64,000 bases of DNA from Bugula neritina (Eukaryota > Animalia > Bryozoa). The translations under genes were made by a program, and so were the position numbers. The notes beneath the pieces are model-generated. The model ran no database searches. It was not told the DNA's origin and was given only the letters and a program-made list of their open reading frames with translations. Location of the stretch: positions 383,628 through 447,627 of the forward strand of contig OZ037771.1 of the NCBI GenBank assembly GCA_964035545.1, given 5' to 3'. This document shows, one piece after another, positions 41,438-49,960 of the stretch; the stretch's first letter is position 1, and each line of letters opens with the position of its first letter.

Positions 41438-44400
41438 TCACAGTGGTTTCAGAAGATTAGAGGAAATTATGGCAGCCAGAAAAATTAGACCGAGATTTCT
41501 GTTAGACTTGAACTTTTTTAGACAGTCATTTGGATCATCCAGATTTACTGAGTAAATCTAAAACATCGCAGTCACATGACATAAGAGAGAGTCACATGAC
41601 ATAAGAGAGTCACATGACATAAGAGAGTCACATGACATAAGAGAGTCACATGACAGAAGAGAGTCACATGACAGAAGAAATAAGTCACATTACCAGAGAG
41701 AAGTCAAAACGGCTTACTTACCTGGTGGGAGAGGTGACCAATAACTGCCGCTACACCCGCGTAGTACGGCCACGTCTGATCCGAGGCTATGCCAGTTAGC
41801 AACAGTCCAGGAAGCATTGCGGCAGTGAATCCACTCAACCAGAACTTGCTGTTCTCACCAAATCGGAGAGCCGTTGACTTCACCCCAACCTTCACATCAT
41901 CTTCCTTGTCCTAGAATATCTAGTCTATTAGCACATCAGAATATCTAGTTTATTAGCACATCAGAATATCTAGTCTATTAGCACCTCAGAATATCTAGTC
42001 TATTAGCACATCAGAATATCTAGTCTATTAGCACATCAGAATATCTAGTCTATTAGCACATCAGAATATCTAGTCTATTAGCACATCAGAATATCTAGTC
42101 TATTAGCACATCAGAATATCTAGTCTATTAGCACATCAGAATATCTAGTCTATTAGCACATCAGAATATCTAGTCTATTAGCACATCAGAATATCTAGTC
42201 TATTAGCACATCAGAAATCATCACCACAAACAGGAAGATTGAATAAACAGGAAACATCGGCATGTTACATTAAGGAAACGAAAGGCTGAGATGGGATATC
42301 TAAGTATGACTTTCAACACTAACAAACAACTAACTGTTTGAACATACAGCACCAGGACTAGTATCTAACAACCAGTGTATGTGTGCTGCAACCAGTATAG
42401 AGCACTTACACAGCCTGCCACATTTGACAGTCTAACCATCAGGGTAGACATGCTATAAATACAAATACAGATGCCATAATCTCTCTCTGGTCAGAGGAAA
42501 TTAGCCACCCCAGTGTAAACAGAAATTAGAATGACTACATATCCTACGAGAGAGAGATATTACCTGTTCGGGTAGATATATTACCTGTTCAGGTAGATAT
42601 ATTACCTATTCAGGTAGATATATTACCTGGTGAGAGTATATCGAGTCAAATATCATTGTCCAGCACACGGCGGCTGAGTAAAGAGGAAGCACAACAAGCC
42701 AATCACATTGACCAATCACAGCACTGCTACCAAGTAGTATACCCCAATTCAACGTCACACCTAAACAAGTGGCTGCAGTTAGTTATTCCAGCATGTTTGG
42801 GAGAGAAATACCTGATGGGCGTATATAGTGTCATATGCTAAAGTCCAGAGTATACAAGAGCAATAAAGAGGTAAGACAGAGCTAACATCTATACTACTCT
42901 GAACAGCGGCCCATCCCAACACAGCTCCCCAGTTGAATGTTAAACCTATAACAAAAGTATAGCCTATAGAGTGGAGAGCTCAATGAAGTTAGGGGGGGGG
43001 GGAGCTCACTGTACTGAGCTATTCTCCATTAAAATAGTCTGTGTTGAGTGTTTCATTTTTGAGTGAGTTCAACCAATGAGATTGCAAGCTGGCCGACAGA
43101 GCTAGATGCTAGTGAATCTGTAATTATTAAAAGAAGGGAGCTTTTTGGCAGAACTATATGCAGAAACAATAAAACTTATCGAAAAAAGCTGCTGTTGTAT
43201 ATAATATATATACATTGCGACATGTACATAGATATACATTGTAACTTGTACATGATATACACAGTGAAGTGTATGAATACATGGTATACGTACCCAGAGC
43301 AATCTGTGGCCAATAAGTGAATCTTTTAAACAGAGGATAAGTTGTTACAAACAGGAGAGAGGCAGCACCGACAGCAATACTGAAACACATGTTACAAGTT
43401 TAATTCAGTATTGTAAGTTGTCTGCCCTAAAGTAGAGGTGACATGTAAGTTGTCTTCCCTAAAGTAGAGATGACATGTAAGTTGTCTTCCCTAAAGTAGA
43501 CACATAATGTAAGTTGTTTTCCCTAAAGTAGACATGTAATGTAAGTTGTCTTCCCTAAAGTAGAGATGTAATGTAAGTTGTCTTCCCTATAGTAGACATG
43601 TAATGTAAGTTGTCTTCCCTAATATAGAGATGTAATGTAAGTAAAACGCACACCTGTACATGTTGAGCTGAAGAAGTATCCCTAAACCAGCCGTCATCTG
43701 TACAGCAAGGAATGTCCAGGCTTGTGGGTAAGTTATTTGACCAGAGGCTAGGGGGCGGTCTTTTGTTCTTGCAACCTAAGTCGTATATGTAGATATCACG
43801 TTATTCCATACATTAATACACATGTTATGGGTAGCAAGATACATCTATAAAAGCGACATTGTAAAGTGTATACAATACCTACATACCTGGGTGTCAAAGT
43901 CCCTGTCCCACATGTCATTAATAGTACAGCCAGCCCCTCTCATGATGAGGGAGCCAGCGCCAAACAGAGATAGAAGGTACAAGTCAGGTAGGGAGCCTGG
44001 AGCTGCAGCTAAGGATATGCTCCACGTACAAGGTAGGTATAACAGCCATGTTCCTGGAGTATGTACAGTACTATGTATCATATAACATCATGTAATACAC
44101 AGCTTGTTGAATACATTATTTGTAACCATCACACAAAAACTTAAGCAAAGAAAAAACATTCAAATGATAGTACATTTGTAATGTAGACAGTGCAGAAAGT
44201 ACAAGTAGTGCACGCAGTACAGGCAAGTTTTACCAATGGGTCGGTCGATTCTCATTAGCTTGAGGTATGGCTGGATAGCCTGAGGTGCTGTGTCAACTAG
44301 GTCTTTAGCTTTGTATGAGCTGATACACCTTGAAGATTTCTGGTGGTGTGATGAAACATTTTTGGAGGAATACTTACATTTAATACAACTAGATGTATTA

Positions 44401-44537
44401 CGGCAGTAACTTGAAGACTCGAGAGTAATATTTAGTTTTGATATCAAATAATATTTATCAACATCAAGTCGAGCAAATGAATTGAGAAATAATTTACTCT
44501 GTGCCTTTTGGAAGCACCGAAAAGAGGATATCATCAT
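41438..44537 (-). CDS. COQ2: 4-hydroxybenzoate polyprenyltransferase, mitochondrial, with mutually exclusive exons 42945-42812 and 42760-42627
   Basis: [13 protein letters not shown]|[53 protein letters not shown]|[28 protein letters not shown]...LLKPL*. Confidence 0.96.
41570..41677. repeat. 18-bp repeat containing GTCACATGAC in the last COQ2 intron
   Basis: 6 copies. Confidence 0.9.
41912..42215. repeat. 25-bp minisatellite abutting a COQ2 acceptor
   Basis: About 12 copies of AGAATATCTAGTCTATTAGCACATC. Confidence 0.95.
42627..42760 (-). CDS. COQ2: COQ2 alternative exon, rhodoquinone (coq-2e) type
   Basis: 134 nt; [15 protein letters not shown]...[10 protein letters not shown]; intact TTTAG|G and CAG|GTAATA sites. 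Confidence 0.9.
42812..42945 (-). CDS. COQ2: COQ2 alternative exon, ubiquinone (coq-2a) type
   Basis: 134 nt; [15 protein letters not shown]...[10 protein letters not shown]. Confidence 0.92.
43412..43642. repeat. About 31-34 bp minisatellite in a COQ2 intron
   Basis: About 7 copies of TGTAAGTTGTCTTCCCTAAAGTAGA... Confidence 0.9.
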
Positions 44538-47030
44538 AATACAATCAAGTAAAGTCACGCTTTTGTTTTTATTTGACAGTCAAGTGACACCTTGAGATAC
44601 ACGGCTCTGTTTTAGATACTTCTACTTCATTTTTCTACAACAAAACAAAGAGTTTAGGCTAAAAATAACAAAGCTCAGAGCTGAGGGTATAGCATTAGCT
44701 TTAGTTTACATATATCATTCATTATGATTATATGATTATCATCATGTCTGCAGTTTGAAATTGTGACTCAGAAAATTGTTTAAATCAGCATCAAAGAAAA
44801 ACTAAATATAAATTTTGAGAAAAAAACACCAAGTCAATAGGCATAGCATACTGATAATTATAGTTAATGTTATACTTATAGTCATAAACATGGTGATCCT
44901 GATCATGCTGATGGTGATACGCCTACGATTTCTTTTATAATAATTATAATAACATGATAATGATAGGCTTATTTAATATTAAAAAGTTTTTGTAGTAAAC
45001 AGTTAACATCTTAAAAATACTTAAATGCTGATAATTTATGGAAACAAGAATTAATATTAAATAATATTAATAATTCAAGTCAAGTAATTAGCTTTACACC
45101 TCTTTCTAAACTGAGCACTGAGCGGAACGGTAGTTAATAAGAAATGTATAAACTTGCACGAGTTGAATGAAAACCAGAAAATCCTATGCTGTCAAAGTGG
45201 TTCGTAGAGGTATTAATCGGAACTTTCTGTCTACAACTAACTAAACAATAATTAGGAAAATTGCTAGAAACTAGCTACTAATTTTTTTTTCCACTCGAAG
45301 CTTCCTGTTACAAAATGCAATAATAAAGCTACTGCAGAAGGCTTAGAGAGTAATTATTATATTCAATTTTTTATTATGCAACAGGAAATAATGATCAAAC
45401 CAACAAGTGTAATACTATGAATCAGAATTCAAATCTGTTTTTGTGATTATTTCAATGAAAAAGTTGTAGTATCTGAAAAAAATGTAAGTATAAGTATTAG
45501 CCTTAGGATAGTCTAGTATAACTATAACTTTAACTAATAACTATAAGTATTACTTTTACTTTTAGTACAACTAATAAACTATAGTATTAGTATTACTATT
45601 AGTATTACTATTACTAGTAGTATAAGTATAATTTTAAGCTGAAGTTGTATTACTGTTGGTGTTACTATTTTAGCTTGAAGTTGGGCACATAATGATGATC
45701 AAATTGATATTGATGCTTATTACTATTACTATTAGTATTGCTAATACTAATACTAATAGTAATAAGCATCAATATTAGTTATTAACTACGATTGTCATTA
45801 TGATTATGATTGTGTGAATCAGAATGCTTGTGACTCTAACTGTGATTTACTTAACAGTTACTGTGCGACTGCGTTTTGAGTTATGATATTGAAATAGTAA
45901 TTCAAAATTGAGTCATTAATAGTATTGCTATTACTATTACTATTAGTATTAGTATTACTATAAGTATAAGTATAACTATAAATATTAGCCTAATGTAATT
46001 AAACTAAAAGACAAAAAATTATAGTGGCTACGATGTGAAAATGATTTACTATAAATTTTTGTTTAAATTTTGTTTTAGGTAAATTTAAATGTGCAGAAAT
46101 GTAAGTTCGAAATTTTTATTGGAATATAGAAAATTCGAATTATAACTAATACTAATGATTGAAGAAAAAGCGTTCAATTAAAATTAAAAAGTGGCTGTTT
46201 CAATAATGCTTATTTATGTTTATATTGTTCAACTAAAATTTAGTCTTATTATTTTTGTTAATATGGTGATCATAATAACAGCTAAAGCCAAACTATGTTT
46301 TGTTTTAGCTGATATTTTCATTTAATTGTTATTGTATGTAGATTTTTGTATGGATGTGATAATCTTATTGTTAATGGTTAATTGAATACATAACTCAAAT
46401 TGCTTTCTGGTTAAACACAAATAAGTTCTCACCAAGCTAACAACAGACACTTTGCTGTCAATCATTCACAGCTTTGTCTGGCTGCTGTGGACCTTGTCAA
46501 TAGTTTTTATCTTTTTTCACTAAATAATCTTTTTCTGCATTCAACTAAAAAAATAAGCAAAATATATTTCACTGTATAACAAGCATTGCTTGTTCAGCCA
46601 CCAACACACTTTCTATTAAATCTTAGAGATTTAGTGAGTGTAGCTAAAGCTCTTACATAGCTAAGTTCTCTATTAGGTAGCTAAATAGATCTGTCACTTA
46701 AAACATGCACAACAGTGTCACCTACTTGCTGTCTTGTATTTAATCATTTGACATCAGATGAAATATCTTTACATAACACACAACTAAGTATCTCTACATA
46801 ATAAACAACTAAGCATCTTTACATAACACACAACTAAGCATCTTTACATAACACACAACTAAGCATCTTTACATAACACACAAAGTATTATTAGTTATTC
46901 AGCTCATCTTTAAAAGAGAGGCTTAAAGTTTTATAGCTTTTATAAAAGTATTTTAATGTATGTATTTAGGAAAAGTTTCAGCATGAATAGGTAACCAATT
47001 GCAAGAGTTTGTAACCATGTAACTTGTCTC

Positions 47031-49960
47031 TAAGTATATATCTACTCTGTCACAGGTATATTATAAGTATATATCTACTCTGTCACAGGTATATTATAAG
47101 TATATATCTACTCTGTCACAGGTATATTATAAGTATATATCTACTCTGTCACAGGTATATTATAAGTATATATCTACTCTGTCACAGGTATATTATAAGT
47201 ATATATCTACTCTGTCACAGTTATATTATAAGTATATATCTACTCTGTCACAGGTATATTATAAGTATATATCTACTCTGTCACAGGTATATTATAAGTA
47301 TATATCTACTCTGTCACAGGTATATTATAAGTATATATCTACTCTGTCACAGGTATATTATAAGTATATATCTACTCTGTCACAGGTATATTATAAGTAT
47401 ATATCTACTCTGTCACAGGTATATTATAAGTATATATCTACTCTGTCACAGTTATATTATAAGTATATATCTACTCTGTCACAGGTATATTATAAGTATA
47501 TATCTACTCTGTCACAGGTGTATTATAAGTATATATCTACTCTGTCACAGGTATATTATAAGTATATATCTACTCTGTCACAGGTATATTATAAGTATAT
47601 ATCTACTCTGTCACAGGTATATTATAAGTATATATCTACTCTGTCACAGGTATATTATAAGTATATATCTACTCTGTCACAGGTATATTATAAGTATATA
47701 TCTACTCTGTCACAGGTATATTATAAGTATATATCTACTCTGTCACAGGTATATTATAAGTATATATCTACTCTGTCACAGGTATATTATAAGTATATAT
47801 CTACTCTGTCACAGGTATATTATAAGTATATATCTACTCTGTCACAGGTGTATTATAAGTATATATCTACTCTGTCACAGGTATATTATAAGTATATATC
47901 TACTCTGTCACAGTTATATTATAAGTATATATCTACTCTGTCACAGGTATATTATAAGTATATATCTACTCTGTCACAGGTGTATTATAAGTATATATCT
48001 ACTCTGTCACAGGTATATTATAAGTATATATCTACTCTGTCACAGGTATATTGTAAGTATATATCTACTCTGTCACAGGTATATTATAAGTATATATCTA
48101 CTCTGTCACAGGTATATTATAAGTATATATCTACTCTGTCACAGGTATATTATAAGTATATATCTACTCTGTCACAGGTATATTATAAGTATATATCTAC
48201 TCTGTCACAGGTATATTATAAGTATATATCTACTCTGTCACAGTTATATTATAAGTATATATCTACTCTGTCACAGGTATATTATAAGTATATATCTACT
48301 CTGTCACAGGTGTATTATAAGTATATATCTACTCTGTCACAGGTATATTATAAGTATATATCTACTCTGTCACAGGTATATTATAAGTATATATCTACTC
48401 TGTCACAGGTATATTATAAGTATATATCTACTCTGTCACAGGTATATTATAAGTATATATCTACTCTGTCACAGGTATATTATAAGTATATATCTACCCT
48501 ATCACAGGTATATTATAAGTATATATCTACTCTGTCACAGGTATATTATAAGTATATATCTACTCTGTCACAGGTATATTATAAGTATATATCTACTCTA
48601 TCACAGGTATATTATAAGTATATATATACCCTATCACAGGTATATTATAAGTATATATCTACTCTGTCACAGGTATATTATAAGTATATATCTACCCTAT
48701 CACAGGTATATTATAAGTATATATCTTCTCTGTCACAGGTATATTATAAGTATATATCTACTCTGTCACAGGTATATTATAAGTATGTATCTACTCTGTC
48801 ACAGGTATATTATAAGTATATATCTACTCTGTCACAGGTATATTATAAGTATATATCTACTCTGTCACAGGTATATTATAAGTATATATCTACTCTGTCA
48901 CAGGTATATTATAAGTATATATCTACTCTATCACAGGTATATTATAAGTATATATCTACTCTGTCACAGGTGTATTATAAGTATATATCTACTCTGTCAC
49001 AGGTATATTATAAGTATATATCTACTCTATCACAGGTATATTACTCGTATAAGTATATATCTACTCTGTCACAGGTGTATTATAAGTATATATCTACTCT
49101 GTCACAGGTATATTATAAGTATATATCTACTCTGTCACAGGTGTATTATAAGTATATATCTACCCTGTCACAGGTATATTATAAGTATATATCTACCCTA
49201 TCACAGGTATATTATAAGTATATATCTTCTCTGTCACAGGTATATTATAAGTATATATCTACTCTGTCACAGGTGTATTATAAGTATATATCTACTCTGT
49301 CACAGGTATATTATAAGTATATATCTACTCTGTCACAGGTATATTATAAGTATATATCTACTCTGTCACAGGTATATTATAAGTATATATCTACTCTGTC
49401 ACAGGTATATTATAAGTATGTATCTACTCTGTCACAGGTATATTATAAGTATATATCTACTCTGTCACAGGTGTATTATAAGTATATATCTACTCTGTCA
49501 CAGGTATATTATAAGTATATATCTACTCTGTCACAGGTATATTATAAGTATATATCTACTCTGTCACAGGTATATTATAAGTATATATCTACTCTGTCAC
49601 AGGTATATTATAAGTATATATCTACTCTGTCACAGGTATATTATAAGTATATATCTACTCTGTCACAGGTATATTATAAGTATATATCTACCCTGTCACA
49701 GGTATATTATAAGTATATATATACCCTATCACAGGTATATTATAAGTATATATCTTCTCTGTCACAGGTATATTATAAGTATATATCTACTCTGTCACAG
49801 GTGTATTATAAGTATATATCTACTCTGTCACAGGTATATTATAAGTATATATCTACTCTGTCACAGGTGTATTATAAGTATATATCTACTCTGTCACAGG
49901 TATATTATAAGTATATATCTACTCTGTCACAGGTATATTATAAGTATATAGCTACTCTGT
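47031..49960. repeat. 33-bp minisatellite (TAAGTATATATCTACTCTGTCACAGGTATATTA), about 89 copies
   Basis: 2.9-kb array upstream of the KIDINS220 ATG exon; source of the spurious 975-aa and 814-aa ORFs. Confidence 0.98.

Follow-up and report, generated by a model that had tools for sequence, protein, structure and literature searches.

A COQ2 exon switch in the bryozoan Bugula neritina: either of two 134-nt exons is spliced in, their order is reversed, and the e form probably serves rhodoquinone synthesis

In the window, by which we mean the whole 64,000-nt stretch of DNA analysed here, we found a COQ2 gene with two homologous exons that are joined separately to the same upstream exon, one (a) of the ubiquinone type and the other (e) of the rhodoquinone type. 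RNA contigs show that transcripts of Bugula neritina COQ2 take either a or e. We consider it quite likely that COQ2e is directed toward rhodoquinone, and, with less confidence, that exon e is ancient, with the order of the pair swapped. The a/e system and its biochemistry are already known in nematodes, flatworms, annelids and molluscs. What is new, as far as the papers searched go, is Bryozoa as the fifth phylum with the switch and the first reversed exon order.

On the evidence of its mitochondrial sequence (15,248 nt), the source of the DNA is B. neritina or a member of the B. neritina species complex, a cheilostome bryozoan. The mitochondrial gene order (nad3, nad2, cox2, cob, nad4L, nad4, nad5, nad1, cox3, rRNA region, nad6, cox1, atp6) is that published for Bugula neritina (PMC2678162), five gene lengths are identical to the published ones (nad2 936, cox2 672, cob 1107, nad1 936 and atp6 690), the base composition is nearly equal, and two Bugula-specific primers match with 0 and 2 mismatches. 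The window is linked to the same group by its COQ2 exons, which resemble those of the bryozoan Watersipora subatra at 76-84% identity. The first-pass annotation had stated that the record would extend the system to a new lineage if the animal lay outside nematodes, flatworms, annelids and molluscs, and a bryozoan does lie outside them. The features of the locus, in order of transcription, are:

44234..44537, minus strand: first coding exon of COQ2, predicted from an open frame leading to a conserved LMRIDRPI motif and a GT donor
43887..44053, minus strand: coding exon 2, 167 nt, Pfam UbiA E=3.9e-11, AG/GT flanks, phase 1 to 0
43654..43775, minus strand: coding exon 3, 122 nt, Pfam UbiA E=1.1e-9, phase 0 to 2
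43294..43379, minus strand: coding exon 4, the common upstream exon, 86 nt, with joints to a and e in RNA contigs of 4 runs
42812..42945, minus strand: exon a, ubiquinone type, 134 nt, Phe in TFNWG and Ala in YAHQ, the 5' member of the pair
42761..42811, minus strand: intron between a and e, 51 nt, read from the sequence and retained in contigs
42627..42760, minus strand: exon e, rhodoquinone type, 134 nt, Leu in TLNWG and Ser in YSHQ, the 3' member of the pair
42553..42629, minus strand: 21-nt tandem repeat, 3.7 copies, which repeats the exon e donor site; its first unit has an in-frame stop
41722..41910, minus strand: common downstream exon, 189 nt, Pfam UbiA E=1.1e-8, matched by the loose ends of the a and e contigs
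41438..41557, minus strand: last coding exon with the stop codon, 84% amino acid identity to Watersipora COQ2, phase 0

The gene lies on the minus strand, which the first-pass annotation had not mentioned; a plus-strand reading of the locus gave no coding match. The naming of the gene as COQ2 in the first-pass annotation holds, as four exons carry Pfam UbiA and the exon order is colinear with known COQ2 proteins, among them those of Macrostomum and Watersipora. The ESM Atlas returned the COQ2 name and nothing further. We compared the model exon by exon, and its length derives from exon lengths and phase arithmetic: a frame of 373 amino acids results when one of a and e is included, with the remaining exons all in phase. 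The start ATG is putative, and the N-terminus resembles a mitochondrial presequence. The 216-Mb genome yielded no other COQ2 locus.

The pair itself had been described beforehand as two homologous 134-nt exons with an entry phase of 1, an exit phase of 0 and 51 nt between them, and all of this was borne out, with AG and GT flanks on both. Exon a reads G-LTFNWG...DTIYAHQ and exon e G-VTLNWG...DSIYSHQ, again as claimed; read along the coding strand, exon a precedes exon e, a point that the first-pass annotation had missed. The two exons are identical at 21 of 44 amino acids (48%) and 70 of 134 nucleotides; none of 100,000 residue shuffles reached 21 matches, the maximum being 14. The choice between them exchanges a 44-residue stretch of the enzyme's core. 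The two changes regarded as diagnostic, F to L and A to S, were located in a gap-free alignment to flatworm e/a exons and to single-exon COQ2 sequences. Among about 330 COQ2 segments scanned, Leu and Ser occur together in e exons only.

Splicing was followed in assembled contigs from four runs, each belonging to a different study; the contigs carry no condition labels and show the presence of a form, not its level. Three of the four runs were only guessed to be RNA, and the spliced joints argue that they are. The contigs were placed on 42230-43430, a stretch picked to sidestep a 300-nt repeat at 41913-42216, and the downstream joints were hence read from loose contig ends. In all four runs, contigs join exon 4 to exon a across a 348-nt intron and, separately from a, exon 4 to exon e by a skip of 533 nt. 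The loose ends of the a and e contigs equal the start of the downstream exon at 25 of 26 letters, also in 4/4 runs. Spliced transcripts that include exon e are thus present in four runs from four studies, and no spliced a-to-e joint was seen among their contigs, so that the mutually exclusive use proposed in the first-pass annotation agrees with the RNA data. Tandem repeats fill several of the COQ2 introns and abut splice sites (41570-41678, 41913-42216 and 43408-43642, with units of 18, 25 and 32 nt). The 21-nt repeat at 42553-42629 provides three extra copies of the exon e donor, and use of a later donor would bring in an in-frame stop; contigs over this repeat exist in three RNA runs, but can be placed at more than one position.

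Inclusion of both exons had been expected to shift the frame. Indeed, after an a-to-e splice exon e would be read in the wrong frame and meet a stop at codon two, and skipping of both exons likewise leads to a stop, as read from the sequence. In C. elegans, double-inclusion transcripts of coq-2 go to nonsense-mediated decay (PMC4165533), and exclusivity in Bugula would similarly arise from the frameshift. In Bugula alone, it may arise also from an intron that is probably too short to splice, in which case double inclusion would surface as a retained-intron form with a stop. Such a form does exist: one contig (42732-42840) in three of the four runs (X1, X2, X6) retains the 51-nt intron, which has an in-frame stop at intron codon 11. 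The intron upstream of a has almost no cover, and the read-through contig thus looks like a specific retained-intron form, not DNA. A branch-point-like TAACTAAC lies in the 51-nt intron about 32 nt from the donor; a branch point-donor spacing of 50 nt is the steric limit used in humans (PMC5740500), and C. elegans splices introns as short as about 40 nt. A steric block of a-to-e splicing in Bugula is therefore plausible from the layout of the intron, and agrees with the retained-intron form. It is not general, because the spacers in the three other bryozoan-type loci are longer: 2,945 nt in Watersipora subatra as against 51 nt in Bugula, and 431 and 317 nt in the other two.

Watersipora subatra provides the direct orthologue (XP_067950081.1, XP_067950083.1), with the same pair, the same order and the same marker residues. 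Its two forms are RefSeq isoforms X1 (a) and X2 (e), which are automatic annotations that carry neither the a/e naming nor a link to rhodoquinone. At the amino acid level, a matches a at 77% and e matches e at 75%, and the COQ2 exons of the two species are 76-84% identical. We considered whether exon e might be a non-functional copy, an error of assembly or DNA of a different animal, given that the assembly does contain some foreign contigs, as seen from a bacterial COX1 on C17. Against this, exon e sits in one gene together with exons that match Watersipora COQ2 at the level just given, is spliced in four independent studies and is conserved in Watersipora, which refutes such a reading, and we give it practically no weight.

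Exon e is under constraint at the protein level: between Bugula and Watersipora, 19 codons of e have a silent change only and 11 an amino acid change, with 17 and 10 in exon a. A metagenome scan brought up the same pair, in the same a-then-e order, in two more genomes (L026; L027/L028). Their exons group with bryozoan ones and both genomes are probably bryozoan, although L026 could come from another lophophorate. In none of the four bryozoan or bryozoan-like genomes has either marker residue changed. Full-length protein searches matched mainly fish, with Watersipora and Octopus as the only lophotrochozoans and with brachiopods, phoronids, nemerteans and rotifers outside the sample; a search with the e exon region among full-length proteins gave few relatives. 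Farther afield, Bugula exon e is closer in amino acids to the e exon of Macrostomum (70% identity) than to its a exon (55%), and exon a shows 70-75% identity to single-exon COQ2 genes from octopus, fish, jellyfish and a green alga. In Octopus bimaculoides and Daphnia carinata, COQ2 has the same 44-codon block with Phe and Ala, and no second exon. In Octopus bimaculoides (L020:7458-7589), a cephalopod, the single exon is of the a type and e seems to have been lost, while it is present in other molluscs.

The closest known system is the coq-2 6a/6e pair of C. elegans, other nematodes, flatworms, molluscs and annelids (PMC7434440). It shares with the Bugula pair the gene, the exon position, the 134-nt length, the Phe/Ala versus Leu/Ser residues, mutually exclusive splicing and the frameshift if both exons are included, and the Bugula lengths of 134/134 nt fall inside the 131-140 range of a/e switch exons. 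Apart from the phylum, they differ in spacing and in order. The spacer of 51 nt in Bugula compares with 117 nt or more in the species of that study. Bugula has a first and e second, and each of the 17 species in Tan et al. 2020 (PMC7434440) has the reverse, as taken from their supplement 3 with strand considered; having e first is a trait common to these species, and the authors did not define the switch by it. Our own survey repeats this split: a lies upstream of e in four bryozoan-type loci (Bugula, Watersipora, L026 and L027/L028), and e upstream of a in L019, L022 and L025, which together comprise Macrostomum, Echinostoma and a mollusc- or annelid-like contig.

A reversed order can come about in two ways, by reshuffling of an old pair or by a bryozoan exon duplication of its own, in which the downstream copy converged on e-type residues and took on the same function. 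The second explains the order in one step, and the order is a-then-e in 4/4 bryozoan or bryozoan-like loci and in 0/20 others; the marker changes need single-base steps only, and Tan et al. point to mrp-1 as an earlier case of origin more than once (PMC7434440). In exon trees, however, bryozoan e groups with e exons of flatworms and of mollusc/annelid-like type (support 95/86 in the protein tree, 78/90 and 82/89 in DNA trees), and e pairs with e across phyla in every informative tree. A clade of bryozoan a and e is 8-15 log units worse in every test. It survives approximately unbiased (AU) testing with protein (p-AU 0.21 and 0.14), with all codon positions (0.065) and with the marker codons dropped (0.08-0.18), and is rejected in one of the eight AU tests, that with codon positions 1+2 (p-AU 0.012); third positions carry no signal. 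These trees rest on 44 codons, with functional convergence possible, and are weak for the question of origin.

Single residues point the same way as the trees. At a site that is Cys in most e exons and in most single-exon COQ2, Ile/Leu is found in the a exons of bryozoans, of two flatworms and of L022; this looks like one derived state that they have in common and hints at a shared origin. The e exons have in common Val/Ile7 and mostly Met35. Since e groups with e across phyla, the sequence data favour a single old duplication followed by a swap of order over a separate origin of the bryozoan pair with the same function, which we consider unlikely but a serious contender. The fuller version of the latter, with a bryozoan duplication that converged on both the residues and rhodoquinone synthesis, seems to us a little less likely again; if true, it would speak directly for more than one gain of rhodoquinone synthesis in animals. 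Under the old duplication that we prefer, bryozoan e would go back to the ancient exon that other spiralians also have, and one more tandem duplication, together with a loss, may have reversed the order in the lineage of bryozoans.

By analogy with C. elegans genetics, COQ2a would prenylate 4-hydroxybenzoate toward ubiquinone, and COQ2e would prenylate 3-hydroxyanthranilate from the kynurenine pathway toward rhodoquinone. Rhodoquinone would let mitochondria use fumarate or other acceptors at low oxygen, or while sulfide or cyanide inhibits complex IV. In C. elegans, deletion of exon 6e abolishes rhodoquinone and survival in cyanide (PMC7434440). On this analogy we infer that Bugula makes rhodoquinone and reduces fumarate. 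Kynureninase and the kynurenine pathway, to which the first-pass annotation had drawn attention, were looked for by a genome search that reports presence only, and the following were found:

C2: TDO gene
C1: kynureninase gene
C3: HAAO gene
C3: KMO, at least one exon

With these four genes present, Bugula can probably make 3-hydroxyanthranilate. Domains of alternative oxidase, opine dehydrogenase and pyruvate:ferredoxin oxidoreductase were not found in the genome; these are weak negatives in a genome this rich in introns.

Exon e could also be real and spliced but serve to tune ubiquinone synthesis, or to accept another aromatic substrate, in place of making rhodoquinone. The Leu and Ser residues are markers, not proven determinants of substrate choice: the Ala/Ser marker sorts poorly in annelids (PMC12403961), Leu alone occurs also in single-exon animal COQ2 genes, with Ala at the second marker (L023:10124-10258, L029:628-759), and a distant 4-hydroxybenzoate prenyltransferase, PDB 4OD4, also has Leu and Ser in the two marker columns when aligned. 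Nor is the link between exon and product one to one, as siboglinids keep exon e and have lost most of the kynurenine pathway (PMC12403961), while rhodoquinone has also been reported in animals without COQ2e (10.64898/2026.04.08.717022). The RquA route of bacteria, protists and freshwater sponges arrives at the same end product by direct conversion of ubiquinone, with an enzyme unrelated to COQ2 (10.64898/2026.04.08.717022). On the other side stand the constraint on the exon, the retention of both markers in four genomes and the presence of the 3-hydroxyanthranilate pathway genes, and a role apart from rhodoquinone thus appears improbable to us. Rhodoquinone synthesis by COQ2e is the reading that we prefer.

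We found no paper on rhodoquinone in bryozoans or lophophorates, with most subscription journals outside the search, and no bryozoan quinone measurement in the literature searched; the papers of 2025 and 2026 that we consulted say nothing of bryozoans in this connection. The finding of the switch in another lophotrochozoan is no large surprise, because a single origin would predict such an extension. Whether the COQ2e route arose once or several times was left open by Tan et al. 2020 (PMC7434440), and the reversed order offers a usable character for this question, as it implies either the reshuffling of an old pair or two gains of the switch. The question becomes more testable by this, and is not settled. 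A further prediction is that fouling bryozoans, which are widespread, have mitochondria that are facultatively anaerobic.

Lastly, some observations concern other parts of the assembly. At least 4.1 kb of mitochondrial sequence lies in a large nuclear contig (C6:11172572-11176912, L004), 98.6% identical to the mitochondrial contig C321, and is either a recent nuclear insertion or a misassembly. The bacterial COX1 mentioned above (C17:12213-13505, L005) is on a small contig, has a best match of 84% to named genomes and derives from a symbiont or contaminant, and C214 and C73 carry further mitochondrial-type COX1 copies, perhaps from other animals. In the window, 47015-49959 is a 3-kb tandem array whose plus strand has long frames without stops; it is probably a simple repeat and no gene.
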